NCBI RefSeq assembly: GCF_001194135.2 | Contig: NC_068997.1 | Coordinates: 20,261,556 to 20,306,118 of the forward strand | From: Octopus bimaculoides | Lineage: Eukaryota | Length of the DNA: 44,563 bases | Direction of reading: 5' to 3' | In this document: one piece after another, positions 13,501 to 16,500 of the stretch | Layout: each line of letters begins with the position of its first letter | Numbering within the stretch: the stretch's first letter is position 1 | Position numbers and translations under genes: made by a program | The notes under the pieces: model-generated | The model's input: the letters and a program-made list of their open reading frames with translations, nothing else | Database searches by the model: none | Told to the model about the DNA's origin: nothing

Positions 13501-16500
13501 TTGTTTGAGCAGACAAATAATATAAGAGTTGCTAAGTTAAGACAACATCAGAAAAAGGTTAAACTGATAATATACAAACCTTGATATCTGCTCTAGTCTT
13601 ATCTGTCACTTCCATTACAAATTCTGGTGCTTCACCATTCTGACGTTTTAGAAGAGATTTCAAAATATGTTCAGAGAGTTAAGGAAGAAAATCTTTACCA
13701 GCAATTCTTAGACCAATATATAGATAAGTGTACATCATCATGAGGCCATCGTAGTGGAAGCTGAGGGTGGCTACTTTGAGTACACTGGTGTCTCTCAGCC
13801 ATAATCTAGTTGATATTTTTTTTAATTTTTAAAAACATTTATTTTCTTGGATGGTATATTGCTTTCTTTACCTTTAATGAAAACTACATAAAACACCCTC
13901 TCTCTCTCTCACACTCTTTCTCTCTCTCTCTCTCTATGTACAGACAGACAAACATATAGATAGATAGAATAACGAGAATAAAATGAATGGACATTTCAGA
14001 GTATTAATAGATAAAACAAGTGAAAGATAGAAAAAGAAAAAAAAAAGATTTTTTATTTTCTTATGTTACTATATGTAAGAATTTAAAACAATTAGAACTT
14101 TTGTGCCAAATTCTGATTTCTTACTGTCATAAACATCATCAATTCATCTACTGCTTTTCAGAGCCTGAATCAATATCTCTTTCCACCAGTTACATTCGTT
14201 TCCACATCAATTTCTACAAGCTGTATAATATCATCTTTCAATCTGTTAATCATCATCATCATCATCTTTGTTTAACGTCCGTTTTCTATGCTGGCATGGG
14301 TTGGATGGTTTGACTGGGGACTGGCAAGCCAGGAGGCCTTACCAGGCTCCAATCTGATCTGGCAATGTTTCTACAGCTGGATGCCCTTCTTAATGCCAAC
14401 CACTCCGAGAGTGTAGTGTGTGCTTATTATGTGCCATTGTTATAACAGTGTACCAGATTTCAACCCAAGGCCATGGCTGAAGACCAAAGTACTGTGGAAT
14501 AGGTTTGAACCTGGAAGCGCAATTTTTCTAAGTAAACTTTTTAACTACACAACAGTACTATTTGTACCCATATAGGGGGAAAAAAAGGATATGCAGATCA
14601 ACAGTAGCTCCTAGATTATCGATATTTGATAGAAACATATATTTGCAACCAGCTTTGAGAAACTTCTGCAGAAAACCGCATTTGTAAAAACATTCATAGA
14701 CATCTCCATGACCAGGAGGGTACCAGCTGAAACAGATATAAAAAGTGTAGTAGTAGTAGTAGTAGTAGTAGTAGTAGTAGTAGTGGTGGTGGTGGTGCCA
14801 GTGTTGGCATTAATGCAGTGGCAGCAGTGACGATGATGATGATGATGATGAACATGGTGGTGATGGTGGTAGCCATCGTCGTTGTCATCATAATGGTAGT
14901 GATGGTGGTGGTGGTGTTGGTGGTGGTGGAGGTGGTCGTCGTCGTCGTCATTGCTATCGTTGGTTGTGATAGTGGTAGCAGTAGTGGCAGTGGTGATGGT
15001 AATGGCCGTCGTCGTCATTAGTGTTGTTGTGATGGTGATGATGGTGATGGCAGTAGTGTCAGTGATGATGATGATGGTGGTGATGGTGGTTGTGGTCTAT
15101 GTTGTTGTTGTCATGACAACGATGATGATGGTGGTGGTAGTAGTAGTAGTAGTGGCAGTCATGATGGTGATGACAATAATCATAATGATGACGATGTATC
15201 TATGTACGTCAGTGTTAAATATTTCTGAGAAATAAATCCGGAAATAGAGCAACAACGACAATGACATCAATAAGATATTAATTACAACCACAACATAATC
15301 ACAACAAACAACAGCAAAAAGAACAAATATTTCAACATTACAAACCTCTGTGGATCATCATCTTTAGATTTCGGTAAAGGTAACAGGGATTCTTTGATGA
15401 TTCTTGGGAACCTATTAAAAAAAGAAAGAAAAAAAAAAGGACAGGAAAATAATAAAAGTCAGAGGTAAAAAATTGAAATGTATTTTGAAATTGATGTCTA
15501 TGACTATATGGTTTGGAAGTTTGCTTCATAGCATGGCATGTTGGCTAAATGTTTTTTTACTATAGCCTTGGGCCAACCAAAGCCTTGTGAGCAGACTTGT
15601 AAAACCAGAAACTGAAAGAAGTCCATTGTGAGTGTGTGTGTGTGTATACATACATATATATATATATGTGTGTGTGTGGAGGCGCAATGGCCCAGTGGTT
15701 AGGGCAGCGGACTCGTGGTCATAGGATTGCGGTTTTGATTCCCAGACCGGGCGTTGTGAGTGTTTATTGAGCGATAACACATAAAGCTCCACGAGGCTCC
15801 GGCAGGGGATGGTGGAGAACCCTGTTGTACTCTTTCACCACAACTTACTTTTGTTTCTGTTGTGCCTGTAATGCAAAGGGTCAGCCTTGGCACACTGTGT
15901 CACGCTGGATATCCCCGAGAACTACGTTAAGGGTACACATGTCTGTGGAGTGCTCAGCCACTTGCACGTCAATTTCACGAGCAGGCTGTTCTGTTGATCG
16001 GATCAACTGGAACCCTCGACATCGTAAGCGACGGAGTGCCAACAACATATATATATATATATTTTTATATATATATATATATATATNNNNNNNNNNNNNN
16101 NNNNNNNNNNNNNNNNNNNNNNNNNNNNNNNNNNNNNNNNNNNNNNNGGAAATAGAGAATACCAGGTCCTCCAAGTAGGCCCCGACTTATCACAGCAGGC
16201 ATACCTGCGGGCTGCGAGAGGGGGTGCTTGGAGAATAGACCTGGGAGGTTTGACATACCTATTTGTTCGATTGGAAAATTGTTTCGTACACACCCCAAAT
16301 CTTTGTAAACTATTTCAACTGAATTATTTTCAAAAAGTGACTATAAAATAAAGACTGTGCGTGTTTGAGTTCTTTATTTTTTTTTTTTTGTAAGTCAATC
16401 CAGTTCTTTTCTGTGATTGTCAGACAGCATTCAGAAATAAAGTCGGGGTCGGCTTGATCTTTCATGTGAGACTGTGTGACTAGGTTGCCATTTTAATAAG

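Follow-up and report, generated by a model that had tools for sequence, protein, structure and literature searches.

An AT-AC intron with U12-type splicing signals in a UDP-glucose pyrophosphorylase gene of Octopus bimaculoides

Which spliceosome removes an intron that starts with AT and ends with AC from a gene whose other introns in view are GT-AG, and how old is such an intron likely to be? The question is raised by a 44,563-nt stretch of Octopus bimaculoides contig NC_068997.1 (positions 20,261,556 to 20,306,118; hereafter the window), the minus strand of which carries part of a gene for UDP-glucose pyrophosphorylase (UGP). An earlier note on this DNA had proposed that one intron of the gene belongs to the minor, U12-dependent class. 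Our analysis of the sequence indicates that the intron at 14592-13669 is very probably a genuine U12-dependent AT-AC intron in an intron-bearing UGP gene of O. bimaculoides.

Splicing signals of the AT-AC intron

The intron, its signals and the two exons that it separates are located as follows.

14593..14726 (-): upstream coding exon, which begins (S)WYPPGHGD and ends in a split His codon; the preceding intron is GT-AG, with acceptor tttcag
13669..14592 (-): AT-AC U12-type intron, 924 nt, phase 1; the sole interval that joins both exons without an insertion or deletion relative to homologues
14584..14592 (-): 5' splice site ATATCCTTT, 9/9 against the U12 consensus RTATCCTTT
14558..14560 (-): in-frame TAG, 11 codons into the retained intron, read directly from the sequence
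13678..13686 (-): branch-point sequence TTCCTTAAC, with the predicted branch A at 13679, 10 nt from the last intron base
13669..13670 (-): 3' terminal dinucleotide AC, read from the sequence
13580..13668 (-): downstream coding exon, which opens with the split His codon and is followed by the GT donor gtttgt

The upstream exon ends ...GTTGATCTGC (...GGAGCTACTGTTGATCTGC) at 14593 and the intron starts ATATCCTTTTTT at 14592, with AT at 14592-14591; at its other end the intron closes with ...TTCTTCCTTAACTCTCTGAAC at 13669, and the downstream exon opens ATATTTTG (ATATTTTGAAATC) at 13668. The His codon that is split follows the residues ATVDL, its C lying in the upstream exon and its AT in the downstream exon. 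Joining 14593 to 13668 produces a gap-free alignment with all UGP homologues that runs through invariant residues, and the resulting VDL-H-IL junction, described in the earlier note as conserved, is also present in O. bimaculoides gene models. The note's reading of the two splicing signals was likewise accurate, the 5' splice site matching its consensus at every position and the branch site being perfect. The branch-point sequence of U12-type introns lies roughly 10-15 nt from the 3' splice site, and in the octopus intron the spacer after the branch motif is 9 nt (TCTCTGAAC), terminal AC included. The note had added that there is no pyrimidine tract. The 9 nt that follow the branch motif leave no room for one, but the 3' region is not poor in pyrimidines: positions -20 to -3 are 82% pyrimidine, a share similar to that in the U2-type introns of the gene and made up mostly of the branch motif itself.

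Taken singly, either motif is unremarkable in the window. Counted on both strands of the 44.6 kb, ATATCCTTT occurs twice (0.55 expected), and TCCTTAAC, which scores 8/8 on TCCTTRAY, occurs three times (1.4 expected). The pair is nevertheless not attributable to chance, because the two motifs coincide exactly with the two ends of the sole interval that restores a gap-free UGP alignment. Among the gene's 11 introns in the window, only 14592-13669 combines 8/8 on RTATCCTT with 8/8 on TCCTTRAY at 10 nt; the remaining 10 are GT-AG introns with pyrimidine-rich acceptors that score 2-5/8 on RTATCCTT and 5-7/8 on TCCTTRAY.

The class is not defined by terminal dinucleotides alone, and U2-dependent AT-AC introns exist, a few of them in vertebrates (PMC1557818). 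The octopus intron might accordingly be removed by the major (U2) spliceosome, its U12-like motifs being coincidental, and the pyrimidine content of its last 20 nt would fit such a mode of removal. Those pyrimidines are largely the branch motif, however, and U2-dependent AT-AC introns are set apart by having neither TATCCTT nor TCCTTAAC, whereas both U12 motifs are perfect here and stand at the 10-nt spacing. Both motifs and their spacing are also kept in the argonaut Argonauta hians, and introns of the GTATCCTT type occupy the same site in other phyla (described below). Removal by the U2 spliceosome therefore appears extremely improbable.

Alternative splice sites deserve separate mention, as the note had stated that no GT-AG solution keeps the frame. 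This is not strictly correct: an acceptor at 13639 can be paired with either of two donors, GT at 14603 or GC at 14609, to give two in-frame, stop-free options. They delete 13 or 15 conserved residues, including the invariant VDL, and are poor models, not impossible ones.

If the octopus intron is processed in the manner established for its class, the U11/U12 di-small nuclear ribonucleoprotein would recognize ATATCCTTT at the 5' splice site jointly with the branch sequence TTCCTTAAC. Attack on the 5' splice site by the branch A, 10 nt before the terminal AC, would then form a lariat, and U4atac/U6atac.U5 would finish catalysis, joining ...CTGC to ATATTTTG. Retention of the intron would instead stop translation after 11 codons, in agreement with the 11 residues and stop that the note had read (TAG at 14560-14558), and would cut the enzyme after its nucleotide-binding half, with the C-terminal half gone. 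Since retention would truncate the enzyme, productive mRNA from this paralogue would be expected to depend on the minor spliceosome. An Rfam scan of the window returned 0 matches, and hence no small nuclear RNA genes within it.

The host gene, its paralogue and public gene models

Exons were found by tblastn and their boundaries set by hand, the start of the first exon being approximate. The query used to locate them was human UGP2; our conclusions rest on database proteins only. The gene is arranged in the window as follows.

1405..24694 (-): portion of the UGP gene in the window, 12 exons and 11 introns; the C-terminal exons lie beyond the window start
~24694-24563, 22513-22406, 22291-22109, 21411-21278, 15411-15346, 14726-14593 (-): exons 1-6
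13668-13580, 12625-12557, 7861-7830, 6473-6377, 5048-4970, 1568-1405 (-): exons 7-12

The translated exons match Pfam UDPGP (PF01704) over profile positions 1-378 of 413 (E = 7.1e-168, 559 bits), and the best solved structures for the translation are those of human UGP2 (PDB 4R7P and 3R2W; 383 residues aligned, E = 3e-165). These matches, together with the perfect splicing signals, support the reading that a UDP-glucose pyrophosphorylase gene hosts a U12 AT-AC intron. Three O. bimaculoides proteins (XP_052829794.1, XP_014790526.1 and UniProt A0A0L8I5W6) show 100% identity to the translation, and XP_029647049.1 of O. sinensis shows 96%. Protein models of O. bimaculoides (RefSeq and JGI) and O. 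sinensis carry VDLHILKSL across the junction (VDLHILKSLL in the O. bimaculoides proteins), so that public annotation of O. bimaculoides already implies the AT-AC intron. The suspicion that GT-AG-only annotation had missed the intron is thus not borne out by the RefSeq models of these two species, but it does apply to O. vulgaris. At the exact place of the AT-AC junction, the O. vulgaris model CAI9735618.1 is 11 residues short (VDLHILKSLIK), most probably because the annotation pipeline imposed a substitute GT-AG pair. Pipelines restricted to GT-AG and GC-AG introns thus damage the protein at this site, with invariant VDL among the residues lost.

O. vulgaris has, in addition, an intronless UGP paralogue (OX597815.1, 8468955-8471081) with an uninterrupted open reading frame (ORF) of 1527 nt. 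Identity to other molluscan UGPs is 76% for this intronless octopod copy and 63-64% for the intron-bearing gene of the window, which has a divergent N-terminus. Octopods have two UGP genes, of which the intron-bearing one is the faster-evolving. The intronless copy is presumably a retrocopy, and the pattern suggests that it took over the core function while its intron-bearing parent diverged. Because this second, intronless and better-conserved gene exists, a regulatory role for the AT-AC intron in octopus sugar-nucleotide metabolism is speculative.

The same difference in identity would be expected if the window copy were decaying after the intronless paralogue took over, in which case the AT-AC junction would be unproductive and transcripts would retain the intron or use 14603/13639. 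Such a reading draws on the existence of an in-frame GT-AG alternative, a similar one being used in the O. vulgaris model, and on RefSeq isoforms X1 and X2 of O. bimaculoides, which finish in intron read-through after exon 1568-1405. It has to contend with a gene in which 12/12 exons in the window are open and the UDPGP match, at 559 bits, has its invariant motifs intact. Furthermore, the alternative splice would remove the invariant VDL, and the orthologue is maintained both in O. sinensis (as protein) and in Argonauta, where the U12 signals are kept as well. We consider such decay, with an unproductive junction, very unlikely.

Two observations on public models concern the end of the gene that lies at the window start. 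The read-through in isoforms X1 and X2 runs past the donor that follows exon 1568-1405 and encodes VIILLFLFIKRKDIQKVSKGAMFNIY followed by a stop (window 1327-1404 (-)). Older O. bimaculoides models skip an exon coding for 35 residues that is present in O. sinensis; this exon is not in window positions 1-1404, and its place may be outside the window or within an assembly gap.

Distribution and history of the intron

The named animals considered at the intron site were O. bimaculoides, O. sinensis, O. vulgaris, Argonauta hians, Saccostrea echinata, Pecten maximus and Lottia. The A. hians orthologue, whose protein is 78% identical, has an AT-AC U12 intron at the same place, 1959 nt long versus 924 nt in the octopus. 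It reads ...GTCGACCTCC/ATATCCTTTACT...TTGTTACCTTAACTTGAAGAAC/ATATTGTT, with the 3' end also given as TTACCTTAACTTGAAGAAC/ATATTG. Its 5' splice site is the identical ATATCCTTT, despite synonymous differences in adjacent codons, and its branch sequence TTACCTTAAC keeps CCTTAAC, the same 9-nt spacer and the terminal AC. Preservation of these signals while synonymous sites and intron length differ is what would be expected under selection on the U12 signals.

Further lineages came from a search of metagenome and Logan contigs with the upstream exon only, a sample that favors genes with introns. This search gave about 40 short exon ORFs that break off directly after ATVDL. The intron site agrees exactly wherever DNA was fetched, lying in phase 1 behind the first base of the codon that comes next after VDL. 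The introns found at this site, with that of the oyster S. echinata, are as follows.

Saccostrea echinata: GT-AG U12-type intron, 1209 nt, same position and phase; 5' GTATCCTTTGAT, 3' ATTCCTGACCAGTTTTTCAG; signals GTATCCTTTG...ATTCCTGACC-N9-AG
L006-L008 (three JGI samples): GT-AG U12-type intron, 275 nt; 5' GTATCCTTTTCT, 3' TGTCCTTAATGGGATTTCTGAAG; signals GTATCCTTTT...TGTCCTTAAT-N11-AG
L009: GT-AG U12-type intron, 748 nt; 5' GTATCCTTTCAC, 3' TGCCTTGACAGTGACCAG; signals GTATCCTTTC...TGCCTTGAC-N7-AG
L023: GT-AG U12-type intron, 1015 nt; 5' GTATCCTTTGTT, 3' GGCCCTTGAGTCTGTGCTTCCAG; signals GTATCCTTTG...CCCTTGAG-N11-AG
L019: U12-type 5' splice site only, 5' GTATCCTTATTC; 3' end off the contig
L004: U2-type intron, same site, 51 nt, GTCTGT...TTAG
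L014: U2-type intron, same site, 57 nt, GTAAGA...ATAG
L016/L018: U2-type intron, same site, 55 nt, GTGAGT...TAAG
L012: GTAAGA donor at the same site; 3' end off the contig

Judged by read-through peptides only, some 15 further exon ORFs, which continue as [R/S/G]-I-L, would have N/GTATCCTT at the site, and about two dozen others imply U2-like donors. The best identities to named UGP proteins are ~60% for L004, 65-70% for L006/L008 and 75-80% (to bivalves) for L009, values too weak to assign a phylum. Intron state at 80 metagenome-scan loci was judged by eye, and most of these loci are fungal-like or protist-like and without an intron at the site.

The intron is also missing from some animals. 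The scallop P. maximus has one continuous exon across the site, its other mappable intron positions being shared with the octopus, and a mammal-like genomic exon ORF with 96% identity to bat UGP2 likewise runs across it unbroken, in line with the earlier note's statement that human UGP2 has one continuous exon here. The mammal-like exon is no retrocopy, because it still ends at the conserved ...ADVK/gt boundary. We had considered Lottia gigantea (KB203918.1) as a gastropod comparison and set it aside, as its UGP is intronless (a 1530-nt ORF) and uninformative on the site. The comparison of orthologues that the note had called for thus places a shared intron in Argonauta and the oyster and none in the scallop or the mammal-like exon.

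A separate observation concerns contig L009 (ENA ERZ25069863 ctg9124_20x_l), in which a tandem array with a period of ~46 nt occupies 5468-7882, within the intron upstream of the WYPPGHGD exon, and includes some 50 copies of the first codons of that exon. The array appears to be a satellite seeded from the exon-intron boundary in a lophotrochozoan-like animal.

These distributions bear on whether the octopus intron is a recent acquisition. A cephalopod-specific gain of a minor intron would account for its absence from the scallop and vertebrates, and the start of the intron repeats that of the downstream exon (4-6/8 bases), as after an insertion that duplicates its target site. Against this, the oyster and at least 3 other metazoan contig lineages carry a U12-type intron that agrees in position and phase, U2-type introns occupy the same site in further lineages, and one old intron is much more probable than separate gains at a single nucleotide position in so many of them. 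A recent gain is thus highly improbable. The intron is old, no octopus novelty, and likely goes back to one ancestral minor intron, as the note had suggested in proposing an ancestral intron kept in this lineage; the AT-AC intron of Argonauta and the GT-AG U12-type introns of S. echinata and several contigs support that proposal. On the simplest history, bivalves and cephalopods would have inherited it from their common ancestor at the latest, and its origin is probably earlier still.

Known fates of U12 introns are loss, U12-to-U2 conversion and subtype switching, with conversion reportedly more frequent for the GT-AG subtype (PMC2831892). The ancestral UGP intron likely met with retention in some lineages and with a switch between the GT-AG and AT-AC subtypes (in one direction or the other), a change to U2 type or precise loss in others, so that this one site displays the full known repertoire. 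The U12 examples that we found outside the octopods are all GT-AG, so that AT-AC may be the derived state, acquired on the octopod line.

How the ancestral intron arose is a further matter. RTATCCTT in phase 1 necessarily reads x-I-L, and the downstream exon opens x-I-L in every lineage examined, so that the first 8 nt of the intron share 4-6/8 bases with the first 8 of the next exon. In the intron-less contigs L022 (~927-941) and L032 (~1133-1147), the residues N-I-L-N are encoded by AAT ATC CTT AAC/AAT (AATATCCTTAAC or AATATCCTTAAT), an exonic look-alike of a U12 5' splice site plus branch site, exactly where other lineages carry a U12 intron. A U12 intron might have been born on such an exonic RTATCCTT, by local duplication or by an insertion that duplicated its target site, one copy becoming the 5' splice site. 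UGP proteins contain 3-5 IL dipeptides per ~500 residues, so that the coincidence amounts to about 1 in 100 and was noticed after the fact; we regard this origin as unlikely.

Several points weigh against an ancient and functional U12-dependent intron in the octopus gene. The junction, as we have read it from sequence, rests on protein conservation and public gene models. The branch sites of the oyster intron (TTCCTGAC) and of L023 (CCCTTGAG) are imperfect, and the comparisons trace the intron with confidence only as far as the ancestor of bivalves and cephalopods. In addition, the expression and importance of the host gene are uncertain, as it is the faster-evolving paralogue and has RefSeq isoforms with a read-through C-terminus. 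With the splicing signals, the gap-free junction and the introns of Argonauta and the oyster set beside these points, we still regard U12-dependent splicing as very probable. UGP would accordingly join the genes with a conserved minor intron in molluscs, though vertebrate UGP2 is without an intron there.

Other window features and comparison with known introns

Repeats occur within the U12 intron and elsewhere in the window. Those within the intron are the following.

14260..14530 (approximate) (-): SINE-like (short interspersed element) dispersed repeat copy, a 29-mer of which occurs 5 times in the window (0 expected)
14249-14266: (ATC)n flanking the SINE-like copy, from the tandem-repeat scan
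13898-13935: (CT)n run, from the same scan

The 29-mer copies lie at 4869-4897(+), 10365-10393(+), 14283-14311(-), 28065-28093(-) and 30269-30297(-). The repeat usually ends in a (GAT)n tail, and besides the copy in the U12 intron three others are in other UGP introns. The second exact ATATCCTTT in the window, at 30123-30131 (-), was rejected as the start of another minor intron: it stands in repeat sequence just after a SINE copy, lacks a coding exon before it and was judged a chance match. Microsatellites of (TAC)n and (CAC)n at 14747-14797 (-) come within ~20 nt of the acceptor that belongs to the exon preceding the U12 intron. Runs of N, or assembly gaps, occupy 3442-3788, 5338-5988, 16087-16147, 18667-18850, 19312-19886, 33853-34157, 38999-39471 and 40007-40383; five of them are inside UGP introns, and low-GC dips in the composition profile are due to the N runs. 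A 76-aa ORF at 41705-41935 (+) has a weak PHD-finger match (E = 1.2e-5, 25.7 bits versus a cut-off of 24); alone in repeat-rich sequence, it may be a transposon remnant.

AT-AC U12-type introns were first described in human P120/NOP2 and CMP. Like such canonical introns, that of octopus UGP has /ATATCCTTT, TTCCTTAAC ~10 nt from the terminal AC and a non-zero phase, and its host is a housekeeping-type gene in which many U2-type introns accompany a single minor one. The class has been reviewed (PMC8199999, PMC10639083), and a pan-eukaryotic survey of minor introns included Octopus sinensis and found molluscs relatively rich in them (PMC10639083). Our literature searches for a link between UGP2 or UDP-glucose pyrophosphorylase and minor or U12 introns, or between cephalopods and U12-type introns, returned nothing relevant. 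Unlike the canonical hosts, UGP is thus not among the minor-intron genes discussed in the searched literature, and vertebrate UGP2 is without an intron at the site. The UGP intron adds a member, not discussed before, to a well-known intron class, and it leaves knowledge of minor splicing unchanged.

The closest counterparts are the introns at the same site. Those of Saccostrea, L006-L009 and L023 share with the octopus intron its position, its phase, TATCCTTT after the first intron base and a branch motif of the CCTT(R)A type located 10-14 nt ahead of the 3' end; they differ from it in their GT-AG termini, more degenerate branch motifs and lengths of 275 to 1209 nt. The U2-type introns of L004, L014 and L016/L018 also have the octopus position and phase, but differ in their GTAAGA, GTGAGT or GTCTGT donors, lack of U12 motifs and lengths of 51-57 nt, and such short introns are what U12-to-U2 conversion would leave. 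At the level of the protein, the octopus window gene shares all invariant motifs with human UGP2 and the UDPGP-family enzymes; it differs in being the divergent member of an octopod gene pair, with an N-terminus that departs from those of other animal UGPs.

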